Source of the DNA: Rebecca billardiae RCC1528
Taxonomy: Eukaryota > Protista > Haptophyta
Reading direction: 5' to 3'
Assembly (NCBI GenBank): GCA_965240325.2
Contig: OZ251236.1
Coordinates: 1,116,001 to 1,180,000, forward strand
Length of the DNA: 64,000 nucleotides
The notes beneath the pieces were generated by a model that worked only from the letters and a program-made list of their open reading frames with translations, was not told the origin of the DNA and did not search any database. Positions within the stretch are counted from its first letter, which is position 1; each line of letters opens with the position of its first letter. Both the position numbers and the translations under genes were made by a program. Below are positions 10,742 to 54,725 of the stretch, in pieces.

Positions 10742-10776
<35 letters not shown>

Positions 10777-34000: not shown

Positions 34001-34200
34001 NNNNNNNNNNNNNNNNNNNNNNNNNNNNNNNNNNNNNNNNNNNNNNNNNNNNNNNNNNNNNNNNNNNNNNNNNNNNNNNNNNNNNNNNNNNNNNNNNNNN
34101 NNNNNNNNNNNNNNNNNNNNNNNNNNNNNNNNNNNNNNNNNNNNNNNNNNNNNNNNNNNNNNNNNNNNNNNNNNNNNNNNNNNNNNNNNNNNNNNNNNNN
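34001..34200. other. Assembly gap/join (200 N)
   Basis: Run of N; the flanks are unrelated. Confidence 1.
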
Positions 34201-34312
34201 CCAGGCGCGTGCACGCACCCCGCGCTCCGCGGGCGCCCGCTCGCGCGCCGCCCCTCGGGCTGACGCCATGCGCACGTGCTGCGCGCCGCGCCTCCGCGCG
34301 CCGCGCGCGCAG

Positions 34313-35767
34313 GCCAACCTGGAGCTCAAGTGGGACATGTGGCGGCACGAGTACCTGGACAACGGCGTGCAGACGCGGCTCGTCGAGTACGGCGACGTGG
34401 GGGGCGTGCGTTGCATCGTGCCCGCGATGGAGTCGACGTGCACGCTCACCGAGGTCTTCTCCAAGATGGCGTACCACCTCGAGCGCATGGGGTACGTGGC
34501 GGGCTCCAACCTGCACGGCGCGCCGTACGACTGGCGCACGGGGCCCATGTACTGGACGAAACCGGGCGGCGCGTTCTCGCAGCTGCAGCGGCTGATCGAG
34601 AGCTCGGTGCAGCTCAACTCGGGGCGCAAGGCCGTACTCGTCGCCGTGAGCGAGGGCGCGCCGTACACGCTGTGGTTTCTCAACAACTTTGTCACACCGG
34701 TGCGCGCGCCGCACGCCCGCACGCCGGCGCGCGAGCGCGGCCCGCGATGCGGCGCAGCCCGCGCCGATGGGCTGCGCGCTCATGGCCACTCGCGCCGGTG
34801 CGCGCGTGCGCGCCGCCGCGCCGCGCAGGCGTGGAAGGCCAAGTACGTGGAGGCGTTCGTGCCGATCGCCGGCAGCTTTGGCGGCTCGCTGCAGTCGGTG
34901 CGGATGGTGCTGTCCGGCTACCTCTGGGGCATCAACTCCAAGTCGCTGCCGTGGATCGATGGCTCGATCCTCGCCGAGGTGAGCCGCACGTTTGGCGGCG
35001 TGACGTGGTCGTTCCCCATGGCGATCCCAGGGCATGCGGAGGACTGGCCGATCGTGCAGACGCCGCACCGCTCGTGGAGCGCCTCGCAGCTCGACTCTAT
35101 GCTCCACCAGGTGGACCTGCACACGACCGCTGACATCTACAACGCCACCAAGCGGTACCACACGTTCGCGCCACCGGGCGTCAAGACGTACTGCTTCTAC
35201 GGCGCGGGCGTGCCGACGCCCGCGACGCTGCGGTACACGTCGGAGGACGTGTACGATCCCGCGATGCTGCAGTACGACGAGGTCGACGGCGACGGCGCCG
35301 TGATGCTCGACTCGCTCAACATGTGCGACGTGTGGGCGGAGGCAGACCCGCAGATGTACACGGTCGTGCGGCTGACCAACGCGACGCACATCCAGACGAT
35401 CCACCGCGCCGAGAAGTACGTGCTCGCGATCGCGAACGGCACGATCGCGCAGATGCTGCGCAAGCTCGGCGCCGACCTCGTCAAGGTCGAGGACGCGCCA
35501 GAGGCCGTGCCCGGCGCGCGCGCGCCTGCGCCGCACGCGACGGAGGGCGACTCGCTCACGCCGTACGTGCAGCTCGCGACCACCGCGGCCGCGGTCGTCG
35601 GCCTGCTGCTGGTCGCCGCGCCGATCAGCGCAGGGTTCGCGGTCGGCCGCAGGTTGCGCCGGTCGTGGACCCACGCTCCGGAGCACGCAGCGGCGATTCC
35701 CGGCGCCGATGCGCTCGCGTCACCCGCACGTGCTGCTGGGCGTCGCCAGCTAAGCGCGCTGCTGTGA
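34313..35767 (+). CDS. LCAT / group XV phospholipase A2 family lipase-acyltransferase with C-terminal TM (5' end lost in the gap)
   Basis: GAPYDWR, nucleophile elbow VLVAVSEG, DGDGAV, THI. Exons 34313-34699 and 34829-35767. Confidence 0.85.
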   Translation, partial: ANLELKWDMWRHEYLDNGVQTRLVEYGDVGGVRCIVPAMESTCTLTEVFSKMAYHLERMGYVAGSNLHGAPYDWRTGPMYWTKPGGAFSQLQRLIESSVQLNSGRKAVLVAVSEGAPYTLWFLNNFVTPVRAPHARTPARERGPRCGAARADGLRAHGHSRRCARARRRAAQAWKAKYVEAFVPIAGSFGGSLQSVRMVLSGYLWGINSKSLPWIDGSILAEVSRTFGGVTWSFPMAIPGHAEDWPIVQTPHRSWSASQLDSMLHQVDLHTTADIYNATKRYHTFAPPGVKTYCFYGAGVPTPATLRYTSEDVYDPAMLQYDEVDGDGAVMLDSLNMCDVWAEADPQMYTVVRLTNATHIQTIHRAEKYVLAIANGTIAQMLRKLGADLVKVEDAPEAVPGARAPAPHATEGDSLTPYVQLATTAAAVVGLLLVAAPISAGFAVGRRLRRSWTHAPEHAAAIPGADALASPARAAGRRQLSALL

Positions 35768-36057
35768 AGTAGTAGTAGCAGTCACGCGCGCGATGTGCGA
35801 GCACCGTTTCAGAGTTGTCGCTGTGGTCGACAGGTCGTACCACCGTGTCCGTGACCGTGTCACTGATGAGTTAGCTACCTGACGAGCACACGTGTGCATA
35901 TATATGTGACAGCGCGTCAGTGCTGCTTCAGAGCCCTCACGGTCCGACGGACACGCCACACGGTCCCTACTCCCTCCCGCGCATTCGTCCGCATTTCCGC
36001 CGCCACAAACGGTTCCTCGCGCGCGAATCCACCGGCGACGGCGGCGGCGGCGGCGTC

Positions 36058-38536
36058 CGGCAGCGCTAAATCAGCCCGGGCCGATTTAAGCTTATCTCAG
36101 CCCGGGCCGATTTAAGCGCTTAAATCGGCCCGGGCTGAGATAAGCTCCGCGCGAGCTTATCTCAGCCCGGGCTGAGATAAGCGCTTATCTCAGCCCAGCG
36201 GCTCGCGACTCGGCCGCCGTGGACTCGGAGCGCACGTCGCGCGGTGCGGCCCGCCCGCTCCATGGCTGCACGCGCTGCTGTGTCTTCGGTGGCCACAGGG
36301 TGAAGTGTGCTGAGTCTAGTGGCGGGCGCCCAGCTCCACCCACCCCCTTCTCCCTGGCCCGCCCCGCCTGCCCTCGCCCGCATCGGATGCCTTCCTCGCG
36401 CATGCAACTCCACGGCGGCAACTCGGCTTGTGGACTTGCTGCCCGCATGAGAAGCATGCAGCCAACACCATGGACGCACCATCGACGTTCGCCAGTTGAC
36501 CATGTCCGCGCGTAGTCGCACGCGGGTGAACACGGCCCGTGCGCTACAGTCGGTTGTGTGCTGTTGCCATTGCACGTTGTTCAAAATGTGCTGAACGTTG
36601 CCACCGCGGCCGCCGCGCGCGGGCGTACCGGTGCCAGCGGCACAGGCATGGGCACCGGCGCAGCTCCATGGACGATCATGGCGCTGCGGCTAGTGGGCGC
36701 GCCGACGCCGGCACGCCCGCAGCTGTCGGCGCGCACGGCGAGCACGCCAAGCTCGCAGCGCGTGCCGCGGCTCAGGGGCTGGTGCGCACGGACAGCAAGC
36801 TAAGGTTGCGGTGTGCGCCGCGGTCCGCACGCACGCAACGGCCGCCGCATGCGCCACGCGCGCGGTGGCCGCCGCGCGCGCCGCGGTTGCCGCGCGCGCC
36901 GTGGCTGCCGCGCGCGCCGCGGCGGACCAGCGCGCCGCGGCCGTGCGCGACGACCGAAGGCTAGTCTGTGGCGGATAGCGAGCGAGCGCGCCGCCGCGGC
37001 CAGTGAGCGCGCAGCGGCCGGCGAGCACGCTCAGCCTCATCGCGCAACTGTCACGTGTTGGCGCCAGGCTTGATGGGCACCTGCGGCGTTGGGCCAATGG
37101 GCATCTGTGGCCCGTGCGGTGCGCGCTCGCCGGTTGCGGTGGCGCGCTCGCCAATACCTACGCATGCTGGCGCGGCCTGCTCACCGGTCGCGGTGGCGCA
37201 AGCCCCGGCTGCACCATCCATCCGCGCCGGTTGCGGCGCGCTCACTAGCCGCAGCGGCAAGCTCGCTATCCGCCACAGACTCGCCTTCGGTCGCCGTGCG
37301 CGGGGCGGTCGCGGCGCGTTGGTCGGCCTCGGCGCGCTCGCCGGCCGCGGCGCGCGCGGCAGCCGCGGCGCGCGCAGCAGCCACGGCGCGCTCGCCGGCC
37401 GGGCGCGACGGCCGAGTTACGCTGTCTGCCGCCGTGGCGCGCTTACCGGCCGCAGCGCGCGTGGCAGCCGCGGCGCAATCGCCAGCCGCGCGGCGCGCGG
37501 CAGCCGCGGCGCGCTCACCGGCCGGGCGCGCGCAGCAGCCGCGGCGCACTCGCCGGCCGCGGCGCGCTCGCCGGCCGGGCGCGCTCAGCAGCCGCGGCGC
37601 GCTCGCCGGCCGCGGCGCGCTCGCCGGCTGCGGCGCGCAAGACGGCTGCGGCGCGCGCGGCGGCCGTTGTGTGCACGCGGACCACGGTGCGCGCGGCGAC
37701 CTTGGCGTGCTCGCCAAGCGCGCCGAAAGCTGCGAGCGCGACGGCGCCGGTGAGCCCACCAGCTGCGGCGCCACGACCGTCGACAGTGTATTACTCTGCC
37801 GAAGCGCCTGCCACACTTGAGACGCAGCGAGCCGCACACCACAGCTGTCAGCCGATGGTCCAAGCTCGGTCGTGAACCGGCAGCCGCCGCGCAGAGTAGT
37901 GCGCCGCGCGAAGGGACCGTTTCGATCTGACGGGATCGCGATGATTGGCTGATCCAGCGTCGAGCGTGACCGGCAAGTATGCCAAGCTGGGCAAGCACAT
38001 GCCGCAACGCGCGAACGGTACAAGGGCAACGTGGTACAAGGGCAACGGCACACGGCAGACAGGTGCACGTGGGCCGTGGCCACATGCGTGCGATTACACA
38101 TGACACACATGTACAGCACACGACGTACAAGTACCCGCGACCGTCGATGGTGGAATCGATGGTGGAACAATGGCGTTGGCTGAGGCCGTTGCATGCGCGA
38201 GGAAGGCATCCGATGCAGGCGAGGGCAGGCGGGGCGGGCCAGGGAGAAGGGGGTGGGTGGAGCTGGGCCCGCCACTAGACTCAGCACACTTCACCCTGTG
38301 GCCACCGAAGACACAGCAGCGCGTGCAGCCATGGAGCGGGCGGGCCGCACCGCGCGACGTGCGCTCCGAGTCCACGGCGGCCGAGTCGCGAGCCGCTGGG
38401 CTGAGATAAGCGCTTATCTCAGCCCGGGCTGAGATAAGCTCGCGCGGAGCTTATCTCAGCCCGGGCCGATTTAAGCGCTTAAATCGGCCCGGGCTGAGAT
38501 AAGCTTAAATCGGCCCGGGCTGATTTAGCGCTGCCG
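36058..38536. mobile_element. MULE-like foldback element (copy 2, mismatched flanks)
   Basis: Same sequence as copy 1. The left flank GGCGGCGTC does not match the right flank CGCGCCGAC. Confidence 0.85.
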
Positions 38537-38880
38537 CGCGCCGACCGACCCCTTTCGTTTCCTTTGCTGTGTGCGTCTCTTATTCTTAGTATAAACTCAT
38601 TCTATGATTGAGAGATTCCGACGGTTCCGACTGCCTACTTACGCACAACACACTTTTACCTGATGCTCCCCCCCCGACTCCTCTACCGTATTGGCAAATA
38701 GGACATTGTTCGCGCGCGCGATCTCGATTCTTTGTATGTGGCGTGGGGATTACTTTCATACAAACCGTCCTCCTAGGACAACCTACAAGAATGTGTGGAG
38801 AAGTACTCACTCGCATATGTCTTTCGTATCGCCTTGCCGTTTCGATAACCGACCACGAGCGTCCGCGACATCGGTGTTCC

Positions 38881-40001
38881 CAAGGGAGGTCCGGGCCGGG
38901 AGCTCCTGACCAGCGAGCGGCCAGCGCGAGTGCGCGACGTCACTGCAAAGTTTTCCCTGAGCGCCGGGCGGCGGCAGCGGCGAGGGCGAGTACTCCGCTG
39001 GCGGGGCGCGCACGGGGCACAGCGCTGCGGGCGCGGATGTGCCCGCAGAGCCGGCGCGCGCGGACGGGCTGTTGCGGGAGAGTACTCGGCGCCCTCCTGC
39101 GCCGCGCGTCTTGCGCCACGCCTCTTTCGCCTCGGCTCAGGGCAGCGCGCACATTCGCGCCGCGTCAAGGCCAGCCTTGCCTGCGCCGCAGCCGACCGCG
39201 CGCGCGCCGTGCGCGGCGTGGTCGGGAAGGAACGGGCGCTGCCGCGGGGCGAGGTGGCGACACCATGCGCGCACGCCATGCCGCCCCGTGATGCCGCGAA
39301 AGGGCACGGCAATAGATCTGCACAGCTGTTGACGAGTGCTGATCACTTGTCGTGCCAAGCCACGGACCTGAGCTCGAAGAAGATGATGAAAGAGCATCAG
39401 CGCGAGGAAAGCGTCGCATCCAGCACCTCTACTTGACCACACGGTGATGAATATCCATGTAAGAGTAGCCCGCGCGCCCGTCTGGCACTGTTCTGCGTCT
39501 CAATGATCGTCCCGACAAGGGTCACGACCGCACGGCCGTGCACACCATTTGTGACAAGTCAAAGAGGCATGCAAACGGACCGACGACACGCTCGTCAAGG
39601 CGTGGCGGGGCGGCATGGCGTGCGCGCATGGTGTCGCCACCTCGCCCCGCGGCAGCGCCCGTTCCTTCCCGACCACGCCGCGCACGGCGCGCGCGCGGTC
39701 GGCTGCGGCGCAGGCAAGGCTGGCCTTGACGCGGCGCGCATGTGCGCGCTGCCCTGAGCCGAGGCCAAAGAGGCGTGGCGCAAGACGCGCGGCGCAGGAG
39801 GGCGCCGAGTGCTCTCCCGCAACAGCCCGTCCGCGCGCGCCGGCTCTGCGGGCACATCCGCGCCCGCAGCGCTGTGCCCCGTGCGCGCCCCGCCAGCGGA
39901 GTACTCGCCCTCGCCGCTGCCGCCGCCCGGCGCTCAGGGAAAACTTTGCAGTGACGTCGCGCTGGCCGCTCGCTGGGAGCTCCCGGCCCGGACCTCCCTT
40001 G
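38881..40001. mobile_element. P/Galileo-like element (copy 2)
   Basis: Duplicate of 27678-28798 with the same GTGTTCC TSD. Confidence 0.8.
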
Positions 40002-40024
40002 GTGTTCCGTCGTTCGAAGCGTGC

Positions 40025-42022
40025 ATGCCACGCCTCCGAGGTTTGCTGACGACGAGACGTGTGGCCCTCGCGGCCCTGGCCGGCGCAACGGCGGTGGCCG
40101 CGATGGCCGAAAAACCGCCGAAGCCGCCGAGCCCGGCCGCGGTTGTCCTCGAAGCTCTTTGCCGTACGTCGGCCTGCGTCCCAGAGTGGATGCACGGCCC
40201 ACGAGAGGAGGTCCAGCGTGCAATTCCGTTCGCACGTGGCGTGGTCCGGCGTGAATCAGCCGGGATGCCGACGGAGCCGCCCGCGACGCGCGGGCTGCAC
40301 ATGGCGGGCGTCGACCCCCTCGACGCGACGGAGACGCACATCGCCATGTTCACACGCGCGCTGCGCTGCACGCCCGCGCACATGCCCGACGCTCGTGCGT
40401 GCGTCTGGCGCGCGCTGCGCGAGGCGCAGGGCCGTCCCCGCCCGGTGCCCGCTAGGCGACAGCCGCGCGCGACGCGCGGGCTCGATTTGCCGGGTGTCGA
40501 CGCCTCCGACGAGACGGGCACCCAAATTGCTGTGCTCGAGCGCGTCACACGCGCCGTGCCCGCGCACATGCATCACGTTCTCGCACGCGCGCAACGCGCG
40601 CTGGACGTGGCACGCCGGCGTGCCGTTGCTGAGCAGCAACATGCGCTCACGGACGCGCGCACACGCGATCGGGCGCTGGCGACGGAGGCGCGCCTGGCGA
40701 GGCGACGCGCGCGCGCGGCACAAGCGCAGCGCGCACGTGAGCGCGCGCGCGCACGCGCCCGCCGAAGCGGAGCTGGCCGGCATGTGTTCGCGCAAGGGCG
40801 CCAGCGCATCTTTGGTGGCGGCGGCCGGGAGCGCACGCGCAGGCGGCGAGGCCGCAGCAGGTCCAAATCTCGGAGCCGGCCGTCACGCGCCTCGCCCAAC
40901 TCACGCGCCGGCGAGCGCCCGGCTGCACCGCGCCAAGCCAACCTCAACAAGGCTTCAATAATGCGCAAGGCGACCGCCCAGCAGCGCCGCGCGCTTGACG
41001 GCGTGCGCGCAGCAGTGGCGCTCGCGGACGGTGGTGGGGCAGAGGGCGCACGACGCGAGGCGTGGGTCGCGAGCGTGCGCGCCGCGTGCTCGGCGTTGCG
41101 CGTGCCCGACGCTCGCACGCACGTCTCCACCGACGACGTCGCGCTGCTCGACGTGGCGATGATGACCGTCGCGCGCGCTTGGCTGCTCCGACACGGCCGC
41201 GCGCCGCCACTGCATCTGCTCGAGGCACCAGCCGCGGCTGAGCTGCGAGCGCTCTCCGCTGTCGCTCGCGCCTCGAAGGCGGAATCGGGCTGGCGAGGCG
41301 TGGCGTTCGCCGTCGCTCACGTGCGGCTACGACGCCAGCGGGCCGCGCGCGCCATCCAACGGCGCGCACGCCCGCTCTGGCGCATCCGCGGCACCGCCGC
41401 TGGCGCGAGTGTGGAGTTGGGCCGGGCGCCGCGGCGCGTGGGCGCGGTGCGCGGCGCGCTCGGCATCGTCTGCATGGAGCGGCGGCGCGCACGGCTGATG
41501 GCCGACGAGGAGATGCTCATGCCCAGTGGCGACTACTTCTACACGCCGATGGCGTACGCGCCGGGTGCGATCGCCGGCGCCGAGCCCGCTTCGTCGCCGC
41601 CGCCGCAGCCGCCGCCGTCGCACGACCGCATCGCGTCGACCTCTGCCGGGCAGCACTCGCGCTCAGCCTCGGGCTGCTGCTCTGCGGCAGGCTGCGCCGC
41701 GCGCGTGGGCCGCCCAGCGCCCGTGGCGGCGGACGTGCTGTACGCGGTGCCGTGCGCGCACGTCGGCGCGCCGCATCGTGATCGTGCGGCGAGTGAGGCG
41801 GACACGGCGCGAACGTGCGGAGCTGGCGAGCCGGGCGCGCCCTTGGCGCCAAGTTTGGCAGCGCGCCCGGGCGCGCACGCGGACGGCAGCAGCCAGCTCA
41901 GCGCGCACGTGCGCGGCGCATCGCTGGCCGAGGTGCTGGGCGCGGACGGGCTGGCTGACGTCCTCAGCGTCATAGTAAACTTAAACTGTACAGTGTCAGT
42001 GTACTGCTGCCGCCGCCGCTAG
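40025..42022 (+). CDS. Intronless hypothetical protein (copy 2)
   Basis: Duplicate of 28822-30819. Confidence 0.5.
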   Translation: MPRLRGLLTTRRVALAALAGATAVAAMAEKPPKPPSPAAVVLEALCRTSACVPEWMHGPREEVQRAIPFARGVVRRESAGMPTEPPATRGLHMAGVDPLDATETHIAMFTRALRCTPAHMPDARACVWRALREAQGRPRPVPARRQPRATRGLDLPGVDASDETGTQIAVLERVTRAVPAHMHHVLARAQRALDVARRRAVAEQQHALTDARTRDRALATEARLARRRARAAQAQRARERARARARRSGAGRHVFAQGRQRIFGGGGRERTRRRRGRSRSKSRSRPSRASPNSRAGERPAAPRQANLNKASIMRKATAQQRRALDGVRAAVALADGGGAEGARREAWVASVRAACSALRVPDARTHVSTDDVALLDVAMMTVARAWLLRHGRAPPLHLLEAPAAAELRALSAVARASKAESGWRGVAFAVAHVRLRRQRAARAIQRRARPLWRIRGTAAGASVELGRAPRRVGAVRGALGIVCMERRRARLMADEEMLMPSGDYFYTPMAYAPGAIAGAEPASSPPPQPPPSHDRIASTSAGQHSRSASGCCSAAGCAARVGRPAPVAADVLYAVPCAHVGAPHRDRAASEADTARTCGAGEPGAPLAPSLAARPGAHADGSSQLSAHVRGASLAEVLGADGLADVLSVIVNLNCTVSVYCCRRR

Positions 42023-42380
42023 GCTCAGAGTGTCGTCACCGTGCTACTCTCAACTCTGGGAATCTGGTAGAAATAAATTATATTAATAAAATAACAGGCC
42101 ATGCACTAATGGCGGGCGGCCGCACGCATGCTGCCGCGCGGCGCCCGCATCACCGACAACTGCATGCACTGCCATTGCCCGAGCAGCGCCAGCGCAGCGC
42201 CTCTAATGGCGGGCGGCCGCACGCATGCTGCCGCGCGGCGCCCGCATCACCGACAACTGCATGCACTGCCATTGCCCGAGCAGCGCCAGCGCAGCGCGGG
42301 TGGGCCAGTGCTCGTCCCACGCCCTGCCGACGCATGCAGTCTCCCCACCCATCGCCTCTCGGCGGCACCGGAGCTGCACA

Positions 42381-45300
42381 TCACATCAGCTCCAGCCCGC
42401 CCTTCTTGCCGCTCTGCTTCCACGCCTCGCTCACCGCCTTCTTGCCCGCCTCGCTGAGGCCATTGTCACTGCGGGAGGCGCGCAGTGGGGGACGGGTGTC
42501 GGGCGCGCGGCTGGAGCGTGAGCAAGGGCAGAGCGCGCGCACGCGCAGCGTGCCCGCCCGAGCACGCGCGAGCGCGCCGCCTGCGCCGCTGCCACAGCGC
42601 CCCGCGGCCGCGCCGCCCGCCCGCCGCCGCGCGCGCGCCCGAGCACGCCGACGCGGCCGCGCGCGCGGCGCACGCTCGGACATCACCGCGCGAGGGCGCG
42701 CGGCGCGCGCGCGCGCGGCGCGCCGCGCTCGACGTGCGTCCGCAGCGCATGCCCCGGCTGGCGCCCACCCACCCACCCCCGCCCCTCCGCGCCACCCCCG
42801 CGCCCGCCCCCGCGCGCGTGCACACGTACCTGAGGAAGAGCGTCTGCAGGGAGCGGCTGTGGCGCACTGCTTCCGCGAAGGCAGTGGCGCCAGCGTCGCC
42901 GATCTGGTTGCTCCTGCGGGAGGCGCGGCGGGAGGGGCGGGCGCGCGGCGGGGGCGTGAGTGGGTGTCGAGCGCGCGCGCGCGGTGCGTGCCCGCCCGAG
43001 CATGCGCGAGCGCGCCGCACGCGCCGCTGCCACAGCGCCCCGCGGCCGCGCCGCCCGCCCGCCGCCCCGCGCGCGCCCGAGCCCGCCGACGGGCCGCGCG
43101 CGCGGCGCACGCTCGGACATCACCGCGCGAGGGCGCGCGGCGCGCGCGCGCGCGGCGCGCCGCGCTCGACGTGCGTCCGCAGCACATGCCCCAGCTGGCA
43201 CCCGCTCACCCACCCCCGCCCCGCCACGCCACCCCCGCGCCCGCCCCCGCGCGCGTGCACACGTACCTGAGGATGAGCATCTGCAAGGAGCGGCTGTGGC
43301 GCACTGCTTCCGCGATGGCAGTGGCGCCAGCGTCGCCGATCTCGTTGCCCCTGCGGGAGGCGCGGTGGGAGGGGCGGGCGCGCAACGCGGGCGTGAGTGG
43401 GTGTCGAGCGCGCGCGCGCGATGCGTGCCCGCCCGAGCACGCGCGAGCGCGCCGCACGCGCCGCTGCCACAGCGCCCCACGGTCGCCCGCCCGCCCGCCG
43501 CGCGCGCGCCCGAGCCCGCCGACGGGCCGCGCGCGCGGCGCACGCTCGGACATCACCGCGCGAGGGCGCGCGGCGCGCGCGCGCGCGGTGCGCCGCGCTC
43601 GACGTGCGTCCGCAGCACATGCCCCGGCTGGCGCCCACCCACCCACCCCCGCCCCTCCGCGCCACCCCCGCGCCCGCCCCCGCGCGCGTGCACACGTACT
43701 GGAGGATGATCATCTGCAGGGAGGGGCTGTGGCGCACTGCTTCCGCGATGGCAGTGGCGCCAGCGGCGCCGATCGCGTTGCCCCTGCGGGAGGCGCAGCG
43801 GGAGGGGCGGGCGCGCGGCGCGGGCGTGAGTGGGTGTCGAGCGCGCGCGCGCGATGCGGGCCCGCCCGAGCACGCGCGAGCGCGCCGCACGCGCCGCTGC
43901 CACAGCGCCCCGCGGCCGCGCCGCCCGCCCGCCGCCGCGCGCGCGCCCGAGCCCGCCGACGGGCCGCGCGCGCGGCGCACGCTCGGACATCACCGCGCGA
44001 GGGCGCGCGGCGCGCGCGGCGCGCCGCGCTCGACGTGCGTCCGCAGCGCATGCCCCGGCTGGCGCCCACCCACCCACCTCCGCCCCTCCGCGCCACCCCC
44101 GCGCCCGCCCCCGCGCGCGTGCACACGTACATGAGGTAGAGCATCTGCAGGGAGGGGCTGTGGCGCACTGCTTCCGCGATGGCGGTGGCGCCAGCGTCGC
44201 CGATCTCGTTGACACTGCGGGAGGCGCAGCGGGAGGGGCGGGCGCGCGGCGCGGGCGTGAGTGGGTGTCGAGCGCGCGCGCGCGATGCGGGCCCGCCCGA
44301 GCACGCGCGAGCGCGCCGCACGCGCCGCTGCCACAGCGCCCCGCGGCCGCGCCGCCCGCCCGCCGCCGCGCGCGCGCCCGAGCCCGCCGACGGGCCGCGC
44401 GCGCGGCGCACGCTCGGACATCACCGCGCGAGGGCGCGCGGCGCGCGCGCGCGCCGCGCGCCGCGCTCGACGTGCGTCAGCAGCGCATGCCCCGGCTGGT
44501 ACCCCCCGACCCACCCCCGCCCCTCCGCGCCACCCCCGCGCCCGCCCCCGCGCGCGTGCACACGTACTCGAGGTCAAGCGTCCGCAGGGAGCGGCTGTGG
44601 CGCACTGCTTCCGCGATGGCAGTGGCGCCAGCGGCGCCGATCTGGTTGCCCCTGCGGGAGGCGCAGCGGGAGGGGCGGGCGCGCGGCGCGGGCGTGAGTG
44701 GGTGTCGAGCGCGCGCGCGCGATGCGGGCCCGCCCGAGCACGCGCGAGCGCGCCGCACGCGCCGCTGCCACAGCGCCCCGCGGCCGCGCCGCCCGCCCGC
44801 CGCCGCGCGCGCGCCCGAGCCCGCCGACGGGCCGCGCGCGCGGCGCACGCTCGGACATCACCGCGCGAGGGCGCGCGGCGCGCGCGCGCGCCGCGCGCCG
44901 CGCTCGACGTGCGTCAGCAGCGCATGCCCCGGCTGGTACCCCCCGACCCACCCCCGCCCCTCCGCGCCACCCCCGCGCCCGCCCCCGCGCGCGTGCACAC
45001 GTACTCGAGGTCAAGCCTCTGCAGGGAGCGGCTGTGGCGCACTGCTTCCGCGATGGCAGTGGCGCCAGCGGCGCCGATCTGGTTGCCCCTGCGGGAGGCG
45101 CGGCGGGAGGGGCGGGTGCGCGGCGCGGGCGTGAGTGGGTGTCGAGCGCGCGCGCGCGATGCGTGCCCGCCCGAGCACGCGCGAGCGCGCCGCACGCGCC
45201 GCTGCCACGGCGCCCCGCGGCCGCGCCGCCCGCCCGCCGCCGCGCGCGCGCCCGAGCCCGCCGACGGGCCGCGCGCGCGGCGCACGCTCGGACATCACCG

Positions 45301-45778
45301 CGCGAGGGCGCGCGGCGCGCGCGCGCGCGGCGCGCAGCGCTCGACGTGCGTCAACAGCACATGCCCCAGCTGGCACCCGCTCACCCACCCCCGCCCCTCC
45401 GCGCCACCCCAGCGCCCGCCCCCGCGCGCGTGCACACGTACTTGAGGCCAAGCGTCCGCAGGGAGCGGCTGTGGCGCACGGCGTCCGCGATGGCGGTGGC
45501 GCCAGCGGGGCCGATCTCGCTTTTGCTGGAGGCGCGGTTGGAGGGGCGGGCGCGCAACGCGGGCGTGAGTGGGTGTCGAGCGCGCGCGCGCGATGCGTGC
45601 CCGCCCGAGCACGCGCGAGCGCGCCGCACGCGCCGCTGCCACAGCGCCCCGCGGCCGCGCCGCCCGCCCGCCGCCGCGCGCGCGCCCGAGCCCGCCGCGG
45701 CAGGCGCCGCGTCGTCGCCACGCGCGCGCGCGCACACCTGAGGTCGACGAACACTGGATCTGCCTTCAGATAGATAGC
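42381..45778 (-). CDS. RI/NLRC3-type LRR gene made of seven 84-nt single-repeat exons plus a capping exon; no in-frame ATG found (possibly 5'-truncated)
   Basis: Exons ~45778-45738, 45525-45442, 45088-45005, 44651-44568, 44214-44131, 43783-43700, 43350-43267, 42913-42830, 42468-42381. All introns are phase 2 (repeat introns GTACGTGTGC...CCCGCAG). Repeat consensus GNxIGxAGATAIAEAVRHSxSLxxLxLx. Confidence 0.85.
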
Positions 45779-45935
45779 TCATTCTATGATTGAGAGATTC
45801 CGACGGTTCCGACTGCCTACTTACTTCTTATTATTATATCAGTACCTCCCTGCAGCTGGGTAAACCTCATATTTTGTGCAAGGTGGTCCGCAGCCGCGAC
45901 AAGTCTACTGTCCGTTGAACGCTTTCGGGGACATC

Positions 45936-48900
45936 ATGGGCTGCGCGCCGAGCTCCGAGGGCGCCAAGCCCGCGTCCTCGGCGGGTATGGACGTCCCCGC
46001 GACTGGGACGGCCTCAGCCGGCTCTGCGACCGACGGTGTCCGCGCGGCTGAGCTCGCAGGTGCTGGCGCGAGCGACGCGAATGAGGCTACCGCTGGGGCC
46101 TCCACCGCTGCGGACGCAGCGGACGCAGCGGAGAGTGGGGGTGCTGCGACCGACGGTGTCCGCGCGGCTGAGCTCGCAGGTGCCGGCGCGAGCGATATGA
46201 ATGAGGCTGCCGCCGGGGCCTCCACCGCTGCGGACGTAGCGGACGCGGCGGACGCGGCGGACGCGGCGGACGCGGCGGACGCGGCGGACGCGGCGGACGC
46301 GGCGGACGCGGCCGCGGTCGTCGCGGCGGTGGGCCTCGTCTGCGTCGGCGAGCTCGGCGCGCTCTTCGAGGCCGAGCTGCCGTCCGTCTCTGGGCGCGGC
46401 CTCAAGGTCTTCGCCTCGTCCACCTTCACCGACACGCAGGCGGAGCGCGACGCGCTCGCGCGCGACGTCGTGCCGGCGCTGCGCGAGCGAGCGCGCGCGC
46501 TCGGGCTCGGCTTCGAGCTCGCCGAGATGCGCTGGGGCGTGACCGGCGCGTTCGCGCGGGACAACCGGACCGAGGAGCTCTGCCTGCGCCGGCTCGCCGA
46601 GTGCGCCGCCGAGTCGGCCGGCCTCTTCTTCCTCAGCCTCTGGGCGGGTAAATATGGGTACCGGCCGCTGCCGCGCGCGCTGCCCGCGCCGCGCGCCGAG
46701 GCGCTGCGCGCGCGGCTCCCGGCCGAGGCCGCGGCGCTCTTCGACCGGTGCTACGCGCTCGACGGTAACGCGGTGCCGCCCGCGTGGGTGCGCGTGCCCG
46801 GCTCGGCCGGCGAGCAGCCGCTGCGCGAGGCGCTCGCCGCGGCGGCCGCGGCGCTCGCGTGGCCGCCTGACGAGACGCACGCTGCGTTCGTGCGCTCGGT
46901 GACCGAGGCGGAGACCGAGGTCGCGCTCGCGCTCGCCGAGGCGCGCGGCGCGGGCGCGGGCGCGCAGCCGCGCGTCGTCTGGTTCCACCGCGCGCTCGAG
47001 CCCGAGCCCGAGCCCTCGGCGCCCGACGCGCACCTCTGGCGCGACGTCGCGCGCGACGGCGCGCCGGACGGCGAAGGGCCGCCGCGCGCGGACGCGGAGG
47101 CGCGCGCGCTGCTCGGCGCGTACCTCGGGCCGGGCGGGCGGCTGCGCGCGCGGCTGCGCGCGATGGGCCGCGGCGCGCGCGTGGACGAGGCGCGCGCGCG
47201 GCCCGGCTTCGGCGCGCACTCGCCGCACCTCGCGCAGCTGTGCGCGCGCGTGCGCGAGCTGTGCGGCGCGCAGCTCGAGGCGGAGGCGCGGCGCGGCGCG
47301 GCGCGGCGCGGCGCGTTGGGCGCGCGCCTCGGCCTCGGCGCGGCGGACGCGGAGGAGGCGCTGGCGCACGCGCGCTGGGCGCGCGCCAAGGCGGGCGGCT
47401 TCTACGGCCGCGCGGACGCGGTGGCCGCGCTCGTCGCGCAGGTGCGCGCGCAGCCGCTCTCCGCCGTCGTCGGCGGCAGTGGCTGCGGCAAGACTGCGCT
47501 CGCGGCGCGCGCGGCGCGCGCGCTCGCTGAGGAGGGCTGGGCGGTGCTGCCGCGCTTCGTCGGCGTGAGCGCGCGCTCGGCGCGCGCGGATGACATCGTC
47601 GGCTCGCTGTGCGCGCAGTGGCGCGCGGGCGTCGCCGCGGCCGAGGGCGGCGCGGGCGCGGCCGCCGGCGGTGCGGTGGGCAGTCTGCTTGAGCTCTCGC
47701 GCGCCGCGGCCGCGGGCGCGCGCTTGCCGCTCCTCGTGCTGATCGACTCGCTCGACCAGCTGGCGGGCCCGGCGGAGGACCGCACGCGGCTCGCCTGGCT
47801 GCCCACCGCCGCCGAGCTCGGCGAGCTCGGCGCCGACTGCCCCGTCCGCTTCCTCGTCACCTGCCTGCCCGACAGCGACGAGGGCGAGCCCGGCGCTGCC
47901 GCTGGTGCTGCCTCGGGCGGTGATGCAGGCGCTGCCTCCGGCGCTGCCTCTGGCGCTGCCTCGGGCGCCGCCTCGGGCGGTGACGCTGGCGGTGACGCTG
48001 GCGGTGACGCTGGCGGCTACCGTTACGGGTGCGCGACGCGGCTCGCGCAGCTGGGCGTGCCCGCGCTGCAGCTCGGCGGGCTCTCGGCGGCGGACGCGGA
48101 GGCGGTGGTGCGCGGCCGGCTCGGCGCGGCGGGGCGCACGCTTGACGCTCGGCAGGCCGCGGCGGTGCGCTCGGCACTCGGAGAGGCGCCAAGCGCGCTG
48201 CACGCCGTGCTGCTCGCCGACGCGGCGGCGGAGTGGCGCTCGGGCGAGCCGCCGCCCGCGCACCTGCCCGCCGACGCGCGCGCCGCCGTCGCCGCCACCT
48301 TCGAGCGCGTCGAGCGGCTGCACGGCGCGACGCTCGTGCGGCGCGCGTGCGGCGCCATCTGCGCGTCGCGCCGCGGCCTCTCGAGCGCCGAGCTGGAGGA
48401 CTCGCTCTCGCTGCACGAGGACGTGCTGGCGTCCGTGTTCGAGTTCTGGGTGCCGGCGGTGGTGCGGCTGCCCGCGGGCGTGTGGCTCGCCGTGCGCGAC
48501 GCGCTCGGCTCGCTGCTCGCCGGCGGCGACGGCCCTTTGCGCTGGTACCACCGTCAGGTCGCCGAGGCGGCGGCGGCACGGTACGCCCGCGCGGCCGACG
48601 CGCACGCGCTCGCGGATTTCTGGGCTGGCACGTGGGCGGGCGAGGCGGCCAAGCCGCTGCGCCACCCGAAGGCCACCGGCGGCGAGGACGGGCGGCGGCG
48701 CGTCGCGCCGCAGCCGCTGCTCCTCTCCGCCGCGCGCCTCGGCCTCGCCGGCCGCGACGCCGCCGTGGTCAATGTGCGCAAGTGCGAGGAGCTAGCGCGC
48801 GCGCTGCTCGCGGCCGGGCGCGCGGCCGACGCGGCGCGCGAGCTCACCGACGCAGGCGCGGACGGGTGGGAGGCACGCGCGCGGCACGGCCTCGAGACCG

Positions 48901-51251
48901 AGTACGTGCGCGACCTCGCGGACACGGCCGCGGCGCTCGCCGACGCCGACGCGCGCGGCGGCGGCGGCGGCGAGCCGGGCGCGGCCGCGCGCGCGGAGGC
49001 TGCGGCGCTGCGCGCGCGCGTCGCGGACTGGCTGCAGCTCGCGCGGCTGAGCGCCTCCGCCGCCGCCGCGGCGCCGGGCCGCTGCCTCGCGCTGTGCCTC
49101 GAGCAGCCGGTCGGCTCGGCGCCGCACGAGTCCGCGTGGGCGCGGCGCGCGGCGCGCGCCGCGCACCCGGCCGCCCGCGCCAGCTGGGCGCGCGGGCGCG
49201 AGCACTGCGCGCGCGCGCCCCTGCTCGCCGCGCGCGGGCCGTGCGAGGCTGTGCTGCTAGCGCACGCCGGCTGGGTGGAGGCGGTCGCGCTCTCGGCCGA
49301 CGGGCGCGTCGCGGCGAGCGCGGGCGACGACAGCGACGCGGTCGTGCGGCTGTGGGCGTGGGACACCGCCGAGTGCGTGCGCGCGCTCGAGGGGCACGCC
49401 GGCTGCGTGAACGGCGTCGCGCTCGACGCGGCGGGCGGCCGGCTAGCCAGCGTCTCCGACGACAAAACGCTTCGCGTGTGGTCGACCGCCACGGGCCGGT
49501 GCGAGGCTGTGCTCAAGGGGCACGAGGACTACGTGCGCGCCGTCTGCCTCTCGGCGGGCGGCGAGCGCTGCGCGACCGGCGGCGACGACGCGGCGCTCTG
49601 CCTGTGGGACCTCGCGCCTGGCGCGGCCGCCGAGCCGCGGCGCGTCGACGGCGCGCACGAGGATGGTAGCGTGATCACGGGCGTCTGCTGCTCGGCCGAC
49701 GGCGCCCGCGTCGTGAGCGCGGCCGACGACGGCCTCGCGCACGTGTGGGCGTGGGCGAGCGGCAGCAGGACGGCCACGCTGCGCATCGGCGCCGCGCGCT
49801 ACGACGAGGCGCACGCGGCGATCACGGCGGACGGCGGGCGCGTGCTCATCGGCGCGGGCGCGCTGCTCCGCGCGTGGGACGAGCCGTTCGAGCGAGTGGC
49901 GTGCGAGGCGCGCGGCGCGGCGCTGTGCGGCGAGAGCGTCTGCTCCGTCGCGCTCGAGGCGGGGGGCGCGCGCGCGGTCTCGGGCGACGAGAAGGGTGCG
50001 GTGCGCGTGTGGGCGCTCGAAGCGGGCGCCGCGAGCTGCCTCGCCGTGCTCGGCGGGCACAGCCGCATCGTGAAGGGCCTCGCGCTCGGCGCGCGCGGGA
50101 GCCGGTGCGCGAGCGCGGGGCACGACGGCCAGGTCCGCCTCTGGGACCTCGGCGCCGAGGGCGGCGGCGCGCTGCGGCCCGAGCGCCGGCTCGCCGGGCA
50201 CGAGGGCAGCGTGACGCAGGCCGCGCCCGGCGCGGCCGGCGGCGACGTGGCCTTCAGCGCGGGCGCGGACGGCCGCGTGCGCGCGTGGGCGCTCAGCGCC
50301 GCCGAGTGCACTGGACTGTTCGGCGCGGGCTCTGAGCACGAGGGCGCCGGCGGGCGCGTGCGCGCGCTCGCGGCGAGCGCCGACGGCTCGCGCGTGGCGA
50401 GTGCGGGCGACGACGGCACCGTGCGGCTGTGGCGCACGGCGGCCGCGCCCGCGCCGATCGGCGGCGCCGAGCCGGCCGCGGCGGCGTGCGCGAGCGTGCT
50501 GCTCCGGCCTGCCGAGGGCGCGGCGGTGACGGCTCTCGCCGTGGGCGGGCGGTGGGTGGCGTGGGGCGCGGGCAGCGCCGTCCGCGTGATGCCGTGGCGC
50601 GACGACGGCGGCCGCGCCGGGCCCGCCGCCGGCCACGCCGAGCTGACCGGCCACCGCAAGGAGGTCTACTCGCTCTGCTGCGCCGCGGAGGCGGCGGCCG
50701 ACGGCGGCGCCGAGCGGCTCGTCTCAGGTGGCGACGACCGCGAGATCCGTGTGTGGGACGTGAGCGCCGCCGCGCTCAGCGCGGCCGGCGCCGACGGCGG
50801 CGCGCCGTGCCTGCGCGTGCTGCGGGGCCACGCGAGCTTCAGCATCGTCGTCACGCCGTGCGGCCCCGGACGCGTCGCGAGCGTCGCGGCCGACAGCACC
50901 GTGCGCGTGTGGAGCCTCGCGAGCGGCGCGTGCGAGGCCTCGGCCAAGACGGGCGACTACAGCGCGCGCGCCGTCGCCGCGTCCGCCGACGGCGCGCTCG
51001 TCGCGACCAACGGCGGCTCGGGGCTCGGCGAGATCCTCGTCTGGGGCGCCACGAGCGGCGGGGGCGCGCTCACGCGGCTCCGCACGCTCGTCGGGCACGC
51101 GCGCCAGGCGCACGGGCTCGCGTGGCTGAGGTGGGGCTCGGCCGACCACCTCGTGTCGACGGGCGCAGACGGGACGGTGCGCTTCTGGTCCGTCGAGGCC
51201 GAGCCCGACCTCGACGACGACGACGATGATGATGATGCCACTACCGCGTGA
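45936..51251 (+). CDS. NWD-type STAND protein: DUF4062-like, NACHT/AAA NTPase, WD40 repeats
   Basis: KVFASSTFTDTQAERDAL...EMRWGV; Walker A GGSGCGKT; Walker B LVLIDSLDQL; more than 10 GH...WD/WS repeats. The start MGCAPS fits myristoylation/palmitoylation. Intronless. Confidence 0.9.
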   Translation: MGCAPSSEGAKPASSAGMDVPATGTASAGSATDGVRAAELAGAGASDANEATAGASTAADAADAAESGGAATDGVRAAELAGAGASDMNEAAAGASTAADVADAADAADAADAADAADAADAADAAAVVAAVGLVCVGELGALFEAELPSVSGRGLKVFASSTFTDTQAERDALARDVVPALRERARALGLGFELAEMRWGVTGAFARDNRTEELCLRRLAECAAESAGLFFLSLWAGKYGYRPLPRALPAPRAEALRARLPAEAAALFDRCYALDGNAVPPAWVRVPGSAGEQPLREALAAAAAALAWPPDETHAAFVRSVTEAETEVALALAEARGAGAGAQPRVVWFHRALEPEPEPSAPDAHLWRDVARDGAPDGEGPPRADAEARALLGAYLGPGGRLRARLRAMGRGARVDEARARPGFGAHSPHLAQLCARVRELCGAQLEAEARRGAARRGALGARLGLGAADAEEALAHARWARAKAGGFYGRADAVAALVAQVRAQPLSAVVGGSGCGKTALAARAARALAEEGWAVLPRFVGVSARSARADDIVGSLCAQWRAGVAAAEGGAGAAAGGAVGSLLELSRAAAAGARLPLLVLIDSLDQLAGPAEDRTRLAWLPTAAELGELGADCPVRFLVTCLPDSDEGEPGAAAGAASGGDAGAASGAASGAASGAASGGDAGGDAGGDAGGYRYGCATRLAQLGVPALQLGGLSAADAEAVVRGRLGAAGRTLDARQAAAVRSALGEAPSALHAVLLADAAAEWRSGEPPPAHLPADARAAVAATFERVERLHGATLVRRACGAICASRRGLSSAELEDSLSLHEDVLASVFEFWVPAVVRLPAGVWLAVRDALGSLLAGGDGPLRWYHRQVAEAAAARYARAADAHALADFWAGTWAGEAAKPLRHPKATGGEDGRRRVAPQPLLLSAARLGLAGRDAAVVNVRKCEELARALLAAGRAADAARELTDAGADGWEARARHGLETEYVRDLADTAAALADADARGGGGGEPGAAARAEAAALRARVADWLQLARLSASAAAAAPGRCLALCLEQPVGSAPHESAWARRAARAAHPAARASWARGREHCARAPLLAARGPCEAVLLAHAGWVEAVALSADGRVAASAGDDSDAVVRLWAWDTAECVRALEGHAGCVNGVALDAAGGRLASVSDDKTLRVWSTATGRCEAVLKGHEDYVRAVCLSAGGERCATGGDDAALCLWDLAPGAAAEPRRVDGAHEDGSVITGVCCSADGARVVSAADDGLAHVWAWASGSRTATLRIGAARYDEAHAAITADGGRVLIGAGALLRAWDEPFERVACEARGAALCGESVCSVALEAGGARAVSGDEKGAVRVWALEAGAASCLAVLGGHSRIVKGLALGARGSRCASAGHDGQVRLWDLGAEGGGALRPERRLAGHEGSVTQAAPGAAGGDVAFSAGADGRVRAWALSAAECTGLFGAGSEHEGAGGRVRALAASADGSRVASAGDDGTVRLWRTAAAPAPIGGAEPAAAACASVLLRPAEGAAVTALAVGGRWVAWGAGSAVRVMPWRDDGGRAGPAAGHAELTGHRKEVYSLCCAAEAAADGGAERLVSGGDDREIRVWDVSAAALSAAGADGGAPCLRVLRGHASFSIVVTPCGPGRVASVAADSTVRVWSLASGACEASAKTGDYSARAVAASADGALVATNGGSGLGEILVWGATSGGGALTRLRTLVGHARQAHGLAWLRWGSADHLVSTGADGTVRFWSVEAEPDLDDDDDDDDATTA

Positions 51252-51637: not shown

Positions 51638-52729
51638 CAAGGGCTGCGAACTCTGCCGCGCCGGTGAGAGGAGGTTGGGTATCGATCTCCTGGGGCGCCG
51701 CCCTGGAGGGCGCGTGGGGTGCGCACGCCGCGTGCTCCTGCGCCCGCGGCAGCGGGCGCGGACACGGCGCGCGTGGTTGGTCGCATGCTAGACAGCACGT
51801 AGTGCCCTCCCACGCCGCGCGCCGCGCTCGCCGGCGCCCTCGCCGTGCCTCAGGCCAGCCCGCGCCCGCGCGCCGCACCAAGAGCCAGCCGTGGCCACGC
51901 GCCAGCCGCCAGCGCGCGCGCGGTGCGCGGTGCGGTCGGCGCGGGGCGGGCGCGCGCCCGGGGCGAGGCTCGTGTACGATCGGCGCGCGCCATGCCGCCA
52001 CGCGCCGCCACGCTGGCGCCCGCATGGGTCGGCGCACGCGTTTTCATGCTGTCGAGTGTGCATTGGCCAAGTTTGAAAATGCTCATGTTGAGACGATCAC
52101 GGGAAGGCAGCGAAGCGCGATAGACATGCGCAGACCACTGATGTGTGAACGATTGGCATCCTATGATGGCGCAAGAGTCCCCAAGTCGTCGCATTCCTCG
52201 CACTGACGCGCTCACAGCCGCTTGTCCAAGCTCATTTCTGATGGCTGAGGAATGCTCGACGAGCACCCATCAGCAGCCGCGTGGAACGTGATCAAGCTCG
52301 TGTTCGGCGACGCGTGGCGGCATGGCGCGCGCCGATCGTACACGAGCCTCGCCCCGGGCGCGCGCCCGCCCCGCGCCGACCGCACCGCACACCGCGCGCG
52401 CGCCGGCGGCTGGCGCGTGGCTACAACTGGATCTTGGTGCGGCGCGCGGGCGCGGGCTGGCCTGAGGCACGGCGAGGGCGCCGGCGAGCGCGGCGCGCGG
52501 CGTGGGGGGGTACTACGTGCTGTCTAGCATGCGACCAACCACGCGCGCCGTGTCCGCGCCCGCTGCCGCGGGCGCAGGAGCACGCGGCGTGCGCACCCCA
52601 CGCGCCCTCCAGGGCGGCGCCCCAGGAGACATAGCCGCTGCGCCGCGAGGGCGCACGAGTTGATCGATACCCAACCTCCTCTCACTCTCAACTCGCGGCA
52701 CTGGGAGTTAGCAGCCCTGACCGCCCTTG
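51638..52729. mobile_element. Older P/Galileo-like foldback element (~370-bp TIRs)
   Basis: Ends CAAGGG...CCCTTG; arms ~51638-52012 and ~52311-52729. Flanks CTCCTCG and CTCCACC (5/7 match, degenerate TSD). Confidence 0.6.
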
Positions 52730-52747
52730 CTCCACCGGCTCGTTCCT

Positions 52748-53400
52748 CACGGTTCGGCAAGAGAGCAAGGACCCGTGAAGGTGCTTATCATACATCAGTT
52801 GCTCGCTCCCTTCATGAGATCGGTGCGCAGTGATCGGTGAAGGAGTGAGGACTGATGATGTATGAGCTGAGGAAGCCGGACAAACACCAAGCAAGCAGTG
52901 CCGGACCGCCACGGTTCGGCAAGAGAGCAGGACCCGTGAAGGTGCTTACATCAGTTGCTCGCTCCCTTCATGAGATCGGTGCGCAGTGATCGCGGTGAAG
53001 GAGTGAGGACTGATGATGTATGAGCTGAGGAAGCCGGACAAACACCAAGCAAGCAGTGCCGGACCGCCACGGTTCACGGCAAGAGAGCAAGGACCCGTGA
53101 AGGTGCTTACACCCGTGAAGGTGCTTACATCAGTTGCTCGCTGCCTTCATGAGATCGGTGCGCAGTGATCGGTGAAGGAGTGAGGACTGATGATGTATGA
53201 GCTGAGGAAGCCGGACAAACACCAAGCAAGCAGTGCCGGACCGCCACGGTTCGGCAAGAGAGCAGGACCCGTGAAGGTGCTTACATCAGTTGCTCGCTCC
53301 CTTCATGAGATCGGTGCGCAGTGATCGGTGAAGGAGTGAGGACTGATGATGTATGAGCTGAGGAAGCCGGACAAACACCAAGCAAGCAGTGCCGGACCGC
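52748..53400 (+). repeat. Four tandem copies of a ~160-bp unit
   Basis: Units start at ~52748, 52910, 53068 and 53245. A further copy is split across ~54813-54919 and 61907-61958. Confidence 0.9.
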
Positions 53401-53854
53401 CCCGGCCGGCGGTGCGGAAGCACTGCGCAGGCGGGTCTACCGGATGCTTCGTGGCGCCCTCGCCAAGGCGCGCGCTTCTTGCGGCCGCAGATCTCCCAGT
53501 GGATGCGGCGCGTGGTCGGTGCCAAGGCGCATGCGGAATAGTGTGCGCCCCTCGTACCTGAACCTCACCCCGGCTGCTCGCCGGACCCAGCGCCATGACC
53601 GCTGCGCGCACCGCGTGCGCGTGCGGCTCGCCGAGTCTGCGGACGCTTCGTGGCAAACCGCGGGCGGTCAGAAGGATGCAGCAGCTTCGGGAGGTGCCGC
53701 ATCGGAGTGCCTGCTGCTTCGAGCTGCTGGTTCTTGCTTCTCCCACCACCTGCGAGCACTCCCACCACCTGCGCGCTTGCTTCTCCCACCACTCCTGCGC
53801 GCTTGCGTCTGCTTGCTTGGCCGTCCCGCCACCTGCGCGCTTGTTTCTTGCGTG

Positions 53855-54725
53855 CAGCAGTACCATACCATGCACGCAGCAGTACCATACCATGCGCACA
53901 GCAGTGCCATACCATGCGCGCAGCAGTACCGCCAGTACCATACCATCATGCGTGCAGCAGTATCATACCATGCCGCGCGGCACGGTACCATACCATGCGC
54001 GCAGCAGCAGTACATACCACCATGTGTGCAGCAGTACCATACCGCCATCATGCGCACAGCAGTACCATACCATGCGCGCAGCAGTACCATACCATCATGT
54101 GCGCAGCAGTACCTACCATGCATGCAGCAGTACCATACCATGCGCGCAGCAGTAGGCCATAACATACCATGCAGTACCATATACCATGCACACCGAGCGA
54201 GCAGTACCACACTACAGTGCGCGCAGCAGTACCATACCATGCGCGCCGCAGTACCATACCATGCGAGCAGCAGTACCATACCATCATGCGTGCAGCAGTA
54301 CCATACTACCATGCTTGCAGCAGTACCATACCATGTGCACAGCGGTGCCATACCATGCCATGTGAGTGCCATGGATACCATGCGCCCAGCAGTACCATAG
54401 TCCATACCATGTGTGCCGGCAGTACCATATGGCACTACTGCACGCATGGTAGGGATGGTACTGCTGCACGCACGGTATGGTACTGCGCTGCAAGCATGGT
54501 CGTATGGTACTGCTGCGTGCATGATGGTATGGTACTGCTGCGCGCATGGTATGGTACTGCTGCGCACATGGTATGGTACTGCTGTGCGCATGGTAGTATG
54601 GTACTGCTGCACGCATGATGGCCGTACTGCTGCGCGCATGATGGTATGGTACTCAGCTGCGAGCATGGTATGGTACTGCTGCGCGCATGCGGTATGGCAA
54701 TGGTACTGCTGTGTGCATGGTACAC
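53855..54725. repeat. GCAGCAGTACCATACCATGC-type minisatellite that inverts orientation at ~54430
   Basis: Forward units 53855-54430 and reverse-complement units 54435-54725. The same satellite is at 62470-62790. Confidence 0.9.

Follow-up and report, generated by a model that had tools for sequence, protein, structure and literature searches.

A leucine-rich repeat gene of near-identical exon-intron units with a diversified binding face, probably formed by recent tandem duplication

How can the repeats of one protein differ strongly at the residues predicted to face a ligand, while the helices of the same repeats and the introns between them are almost identical? This question is raised by a leucine-rich repeat (LRR) gene at 42381-45778 in a 64,000-nucleotide stretch of contig OZ251236.1, which was analysed as a whole and is called the window here. 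The gene lies on the minus strand, on which the first-pass annotation of this DNA was silent. In our reading, the gene has grown by recent tandem duplication of an exon and intron unit, with unequal exchange between units and selection keeping the concave face diverse, and we assign this explanation a probability of about 0.65.

The construction of the array is highly regular. A period of 437 bp with 7.3 copies and 94% matches was found by Tandem Repeats Finder at 42531-45697. When the exon limits were set by a script that cuts after the conserved ...CAG acceptors and before the GTACGTGTGC donors, seven exons of 84 nt were obtained on the minus strand (45525-42830), each coding for one 28-residue RI/NOD-type LRR. 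Exons 1 to 7 are located at 45442-45525, 45005-45088, 44568-44651, 44131-44214, 43700-43783, 43267-43350 and 42830-42913, respectively, and each is followed by an intron of similar size: intron 1 at 45089-45441 (353 nt), intron 2 at 44652-45004 (353 nt), intron 3 at 44215-44567 (353 nt), intron 4 at 43784-44130 (347 nt), intron 5 at 43351-43699 (349 nt), intron 6 at 42914-43266 (353 nt) and intron 7 at 42469-42829 (361 nt). All of these introns are of the GT-AG type, and every one is in phase 2, splitting a codon after its second base. A GT donor and a C-rich ...CAG acceptor are common to all introns; even intron 7 and the first intron of the gene (intron 0), which are divergent, retain a branch-like CTCAC motif some 40 nt upstream of the acceptor. 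The splice sites are canonical in 16 of 16 cases, and no stop or frameshift is present in 224 codons once the introns are removed. The minus-strand reading, together with the period and the pairwise identities, therefore bears out what had been claimed from the letters alone, namely seven 84-nt phase-2 exons with one RI-type repeat of 28 amino acids each, separated by near-identical introns of 347-361 nt with a period of about 437 bp.

The product is predicted to be an RI/NOD-type (Pfam LRR_6-like) solenoid in which seven full 28-residue repeats are preceded by a degenerate piece and closed by a cap at the C-terminus. Repeats of the RI-like or LRR_6 class have 28-29 residues and carry LxxLxLxxN/CxL followed by a helix (..G..G...LA.AL...). 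All seven units fit the pattern L22-x-x-L25-x-L27-x-x-N2-x-I4-G5 plus the AGATAIAEAV helix. The helical part had been described as near-invariant, and the segment GATAIAEAVRHS is indeed the same in all units but for one D (unit 1) and one F (unit 7). The seven nonamers listed previously (LRTLGLKGN, LQRLDLEGN, LRTLDLDVN, LQMLYLMGN, LQMIILQGN, LQMLILRSN and LQTLFLSDN) were all recovered in the spliced translation. The main argument that the introns are real comes from homology: residues 2-223 of the spliced product align to the LRR_6 domains of NACHT-LRR and LRR-only proteins with 43-57% identity (E 1e-53 to 1e-67), and this full-length alignment emerges only when exactly the proposed introns are removed. 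Single exons matched LRR_6 with E values of 0.003-0.08 (0.0055 for exon 2). These values miss the Pfam cut-off, since the model of the repeat spans the exon junctions and each exon holds two half-models. Using a profile of the seven repeats, 3559 proteins were matched among 1.84 billion representatives, with NACHT-LRR proteins on top, and the profile matches in the PDB were the NOD2 LRR and the Chlamydomonas radial-spoke protein 15 (RSP15). When the read-through open reading frame at 43123-43980 on the minus strand, which covers the exon 5 region only, was used as the query, a collection of 5.8 billion proteins gave one weak generic LRR match (P0001); the source organism appears to be absent from this collection, so that absence of the LRR product there says little. 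The gene has no NACHT or NB-ARC domain, with only LRR exons between two AT-rich spacers, and it is therefore not an NLR. Likewise, no ROC-COR GTPase domain was found in or beside it, and it is not a ROCO gene.

The evidence that carries our explanation is the uneven divergence within the unit. Introns 1 to 6 are 95.4-100% identical in pairs, with introns 2 and 3 being the same (100%), whereas the exons are 79-93% identical, save exons 2 and 3 at 97.6%. Variable columns make up 22 of 84 in the exons and 27 of 343 in the introns (Fisher P = 2.6e-5). These exon differences are concentrated in a few codons. For the five beta-strand x codons of LxxLxLxxN (23, 24, 26, 28 and 1 of the unit), the per-site replacement diversity (pN) was 0.41-0.46, which is 9-13 times the intron diversity; for three loop codons (3, 6 and 20) it was 0.30-0.33, or 6-10 times; and for the remaining 20 codons it was 0.015-0.026, or 0.3-0.7 times, which suggests that the scaffold codons are under purifying selection. 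Even when lower-bound counts were used, at least 16 changes at 15 face sites stood against 47 changes at 343 intron sites (binomial P = 5e-9). The x positions had been called hypervariable, and this check of change per site upholds the claim. The most variable position of all is the split codon at the exon junction, with seven different residues in seven units. It had been pointed out that skipping or reordering of exons would alter this junction residue. This is correct, but it is an automatic consequence of the phase-2 introns and has already been noted for Tetrahymena (PMC6564038). The youngest pair, units 2 and 3, shows the same tendency, with two differences in about 437 bases, both of which are replacements in the adjacent x codons 23 and 24.

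In contrast to the exon face, the introns do not stand out. They had been proposed to act as specially homogenised recombination handles, a proposal that the numbers do not support: intron diversity (pi) is 0.035-0.047, equal to or below the synonymous diversity of the exons (pS, 0.06-0.09), and therefore the whole unit is young or recently homogenised and the introns are not specially conserved. Judged by these values, the introns would be young passengers of a recent duplication, with no conservation of their own. Within the introns, no folding signal (RNA folding z = -0.18), no Rfam match and no terminal inverted repeats or transposon-like ends were detected. In addition, intronless animal NLR arrays have the same pattern of a conserved scaffold, with variability at positions 1, 3, 6, 24, 26 and 28, and therefore introns are dispensable for it and repeated coding DNA suffices.

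Segments have also been exchanged between the units, as is concluded from site incompatibilities: 64 of 136 informative site pairs failed the four-gamete test, as did 12 of 45 pairs that lie in introns only, and the minimum number of recombination events (Rm) is at least 3. Divergence rises toward the ends of the array. Unit 1 is the most divergent, with exon 1 being 79-86% identical to the other exons; intron 7 is 91-93% identical overall to the other introns with a divergent stretch of about 70 nt at its 3' end; and intron 0 belongs to the same group of divergent ends.

Taken together, these observations can be arranged into the following course of events. The gene would have grown by recent tandem duplication of the 437-bp unit, consisting of one 84-nt exon and an intron of about 353 nt, and unequal crossing-over is the likely cause. 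With symmetric phase-2 exons, gain or loss of a unit would leave the reading frame intact. After duplication, segments have been exchanged among the units, as the site incompatibilities indicate, and purifying selection would hold the codons of the helix and scaffold, while the five solvent-exposed x residues and the three loop positions would be driven apart, or kept apart despite homogenisation. The rate excess at these positions is observed, and its direction we infer. Most probably the product serves as a protein-binding module, with a concave face that would be tuned to a changing or composite ligand, and it could plausibly act in a defence pathway as a partner for recognition. The diversity would build up through the germline in the course of evolution, like that of plant resistance (R) gene LRRs and of brown-algal ROCO genes, and not combinatorially within the cell. 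The near-identical introns are useful in this respect, since they provide an internal neutral yardstick for the diversification of an LRR binding surface at a single locus: the scaffold, like the introns, is young and uniform, and the ligand-facing residues are about ten times more different.

Several points weigh against this explanation. First, the pooled dN/dS of 1.85-2.18 points to selection for diversity among the repeats and is not proof of an ongoing arms race or of continuing adaptive change, because paralogous repeats undergo conversion. If conversion repeatedly evens out all but the selected sites, the x codons might just have a greater age than the introns. Second, the synonymous estimates, taken from seven short units, rest on few changes (about 4-5 events), and a single independent locus lies behind the rate excess, which is a comparison among paralogous repeats. 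Third, splicing and expression of the LRR gene are predicted from the DNA rather than read from transcripts. Finally, given a truncated first unit and more than one candidate for the start codon, the gene could be a 5'-damaged copy.

This last point leads to the alternative that survives best, although we regard it as unlikely. The array could be a dead or dying fragment, namely an LRR domain that was duplicated in 5'-truncated form, for instance out of a larger receptor gene, and is no longer expressed; it would look intact only because of its youth and the rarity of stops in DNA of 80% GC. The 5' end of the gene (uncertain over 45738-45870 on the minus strand) gives some ground for this. A truncated eighth unit, absent from the first-pass annotation, is present there and is made up of a 40-nt exon piece and intron 0. 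In the LRR frame, the exon piece (45777-45738) reads ..AIYLKADPVFVDLS and is preceded by a TGA; this in-frame stop is 14 codons upstream of the first donor, and no ATG of that frame lies between the two. Intron 0 (45737-45526, minus strand, 212 nt) is a truncated copy: it corresponds, at about 90% identity, to some 210 nt at the 3' end of the repeat intron and lacks about 140 nt of the 5' half. Moreover, the nearest relatives possess NACHT domains, which this gene does not have, and no matching annotated or transcript-derived protein was found in the 5.8-billion-protein collection, a result of little weight for the reason given above. However, the canonical splice sites and the uninterrupted reading frame speak against a fragment, and the replacement rate in the scaffold, at 0.3-0.7 times the intron substitutions, suggests purifying selection. 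An ATG can also be supplied by two simple models, both of which are possible: in model A, ATG 45782 is used and the donor is moved by 2 nt to 45736/45735, and in model B, ATG 45870 begins a 25-nt exon that ends at 45846 and is followed by a 68-nt intron (45845-45778).

The 3' end likewise argues against a fragment, as a cap exon with a stop is followed directly by an AT-rich spacer. The terminal exon (42381-42468, minus strand) encodes a half-repeat cap (DNGLSEAGKKAV...) and ends with a TGA stop at 42383-42381. Just downstream of it is an AT-rich island (42024-42130, GC 0.47), which may serve as a 3' intergenic spacer, and a second island (45770-45888, GC 0.42) separates the LRR gene from a divergent STAND gene and may act as a shared promoter. 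The local GC content around these islands (0.42-0.47) is about 0.8, and other genes of the window are flanked by similar islands. Since AT-rich islands are present at both ends, the LRR gene may be regarded as a self-contained transcription unit of about 3.7 kb, containing LRRs only, with a spacer on either side. Directly downstream of the LRR stop, beside the AT-rich spacer, there is also a perfect two-copy tandem duplication of 97 nt (42106-42297, with a copy at 30903-31094).

A second alternative, which we consider improbable, is the one that had been put forward originally. Here the gene would be part of a combinatorial variable-receptor system, possibly antiviral, in which homogenised introns act as handles for recombination or alternative splicing and exons are reordered, skipped or swapped between loci. 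Some of its premises stood: the architecture is as described, any subset of the phase-2 symmetric exons would splice in frame, the units are mosaics with signs of exchange, and the replacement excess on the concave face is strong. The assembly breaks within the array, a STAND NTPase gene lies head to head with it, and alternative splicing has been documented for such arrays in brown algae (PMC11378527). The rest found no support, in that nothing in the 64 kb points to cassette shuffling, somatic change, alternative splicing or an antiviral function. The similarity of the introns is no higher than the synonymous similarity, and the same pattern occurs in intronless arrays. When the 64-kb window was searched on both strands by tblastn, no LRR_6-type exon, including orphan cassettes, was found outside the array and its one identical copy, and therefore no local cassette bank of the variable lymphocyte receptor (VLR) or Ectocarpus intronic kind is present; neither donor cassettes nor further arrays support the variable-receptor idea in these 64 kb. 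Copies of the introns were also confined to the two arrays within the window. Relatives were not found in the viral and metagenome collections, where the 40-nt invariant exon core had no match in viral contigs and the back-translated pattern GATA[IF]A[ED]AVRH had no match in metagenomes. A looser pattern, AIAEAVRH, gave 10 viral and at least 120 metagenome matches, all of which were single chance occurrences in non-LRR contexts and were rejected. Even in Ectocarpus, somatic recombination was not found (PMC11378527).

The sole second array, likewise absent from the first-pass annotation, does not help this alternative either. It comprises the terminal exon and units 7 to 2 (31178-34000, minus strand), is 100% identical to the first and is cut off by a 200-N gap (34001-34200); being identical, it adds no independent information. 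It belongs to a block of 9147 bp (24854-34000) with a 100% identical counterpart at 36057-45203, and the gap at which the first copy of the block stops lies within the LRR array. On the left, the two copies have different flanks, and the 1.86 kb that follow the gap (34201-36056) are unique. The repeated block may reflect a very recent segmental duplication, haplotype variation or scaffolding redundancy, and its left edge coincides exactly with the outer end of an inverted-repeat element of 351 bp. These inverted repeats (24855-25205 and 26985-27333, 99% identical) contain 26-28-nt tandem repeats and bound a 2.5-kb element (24855-27333, copy at 36058-38536) enclosing a 368-codon open reading frame with no Pfam match. 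A second inverted pair is located at 27677-28085 and 28403-28799. A 754-codon open frame on the plus strand (39758-42019, copy at 28555-30816), with coding-like GC at third codon positions (GC3) and no Pfam match, converges on the LRR gene.

We rate as very unlikely a third alternative, that this is an old array under concerted evolution, in which the x residues would be ancient, conversion would keep introns and scaffold uniform, and purifying selection would preserve a fixed, non-uniform face for a constant ligand, with neither an arms race nor a recent amplification. It is consistent with the abundant exchange between units and with the confinement of differences to short patches at exon ends. 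The two bases that separate exons 2 and 3 in about 437 also resemble micro-conversion, as the state of exon 3 is common to exon 1. However, to spare patches of 15-20 bp amid homogenisation, many selected events would be required, and the divergence toward the array ends fits serial duplication with decay at the edges. Lastly, the notion that the introns are copies of a repeatedly inserted, mobile introner-like element draws on their near-identity and similar size, but has practically no probability: all of them interrupt the same codon position, the tandem array is strictly periodic and its exons are equally young, and the introns have neither copies elsewhere in the window nor terminal inverted repeats.

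Head to head with the LRR gene lies a single-exon gene on the plus strand (45936-51251) for an NWD1-like STAND NTPase of 1771 residues, with nSTAND1, HTH_NWD1 and about two WD40 propellers; the start codons of the two genes are 65-155 bp apart, depending on the 5' model. Neither an exact look-up nor a search with a 300-residue fragment gave a match for the STAND protein, and none of the collections searched yielded a sequence of the same organism. The closest retrievable homologue (P0152 on contig L001, JGI 3300017182, 1-6443) is 43% identical, and it is also placed head to head, at a distance of 88 bp, with an LRR gene, which has 24-residue repeats and a kinase-like C-terminus. The adjacency of STAND and LRR genes is suggestive of a recognition locus and is not evidence of a functional pair. 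The LRR array with the adjacent STAND NTPase can be named as a candidate recognition locus. A bolder proposal would be that, in a GC-rich unicellular eukaryote, the LRR-only gene and the divergent NWD1-like NACHT/WD40 STAND gene work as the two halves of a split NLR-like sensor. Its LRR partner would be diversified fast as phase-2 exon cassettes are gained, lost, exchanged and perhaps alternatively spliced. We regard this as a long shot; if true, it would be the RI-type counterpart of the proposal made for brown-algal ROCO genes.

Other features of the window were also recorded. The STAND gene contains a 9-nt coding repeat in its N-terminal part (46226-46312; ADAADAAD...). A plant-type LRR gene with 24-residue repeats (22443-23741, minus strand; LRR_1, LRR_8 and LRR_14) is intronless and has 72-nt coding tandem repeats at 22686-23078 with 74-81% similarity. 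A 1484-codon frame at 9645-14096 had no Pfam match. The region 52000-62000 is lower in GC (0.55-0.67) and rich in repeats, with large inverted duplications (54926-57786 versus 61900-59239, 96-97%) and periodic repeats of about 200 bp, and it probably holds transposon remnants.

With regard to known systems, the array belongs to the class of exon-per-repeat, phase-symmetric LRR arrays: its exon length is constant, its introns are in the same phase, its units repeat at the DNA level, and its concave face carries an excess of replacements. If the host is a microalga, the exon-per-repeat LRR design extends beyond brown algae, ciliates and animal NLRs, and also to the RI/NOD class. The pattern itself has been described before, in brown algae and ciliates as well as in the immune receptors of animals, and no new mechanism is opened by this locus alone.

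In lamprey and hagfish, VLR genes are incomplete in the germline and are completed by somatic assembly, for which hundreds of cassettes lie in their flanks; they have 24-residue repeats with LRRNT and LRRCT caps. Like them, the present gene combines a predicted LRR solenoid, variable on its concave face, with a conserved cap at the C-terminus, but its repeats are of another class and no cassettes are present in the 64-kb window. Among animal NOD/NLRC3-type NLRs (NOD2 structure 5IRM/5IRN; zebrafish NLR family), the same repeat class is found, and NACHT-LRR proteins share the 43-57% identity given above; in contrast to them, the LRR gene is without NACHT. The three best-scoring animal NACHT-LRR relatives that were fetched are intronless open reading frames, so that the 84-nt LRR exons ascribed earlier to animal NOD/NLRC genes stand on the literature (PMC4852459). 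In fish NLRs and NLRC3, each LRR has its own exon and the copy number varies (PMC4852459).

In Tetrahymena, tens of thousands of LRR exons of exactly 90 nt are known, over 96% of these being bordered by phase-2 introns, with exon plus intron repeat units of about 350 bp and a junction codon common to neighbouring exons; these arrays are young lineage-specific expansions that have been put down to unequal crossing-over (PMC6564038). The present array resembles these genes in having exons of equal length, a phase-2 bias and units at the nucleotide level. However, the Tetrahymena repeats have 30 residues, occur in thousands of genes and are associated with a LINE-like element and micronuclear regions, whereas here we see one gene, 28-residue repeats and no retroelement association.

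In the LRR-ROCO genes of brown algae (Ectocarpus and Saccharina), 72-nt phase-2 exons encode one 24-residue LRR each, and exon shuffling, positive selection on the concave face and alternative splicing have been described, with somatic recombination proposed and still unconfirmed (PMC3341825, PMC11378527). The shared features are one LRR per exon, a constant exon length, phase-2 introns, tandem duplication or shuffling of exons and a selected concave face, and brown algae also have LRR-only genes with such exons. In contrast to the present array, the brown-algal ROCO genes have ROC-COR GTPase domains, many loci, and intronic and antisense orphan LRRs; in the present array, the exons are of 84 nt and RI/NOD-type, at a single locus, with no ROC-COR domain and no orphan exons seen. 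Thus, the locus differs from the algal and ciliate systems in the class or length of its repeats and from the animal system in the absence of NACHT, but shares with all of them the known architecture and the pattern of selection.

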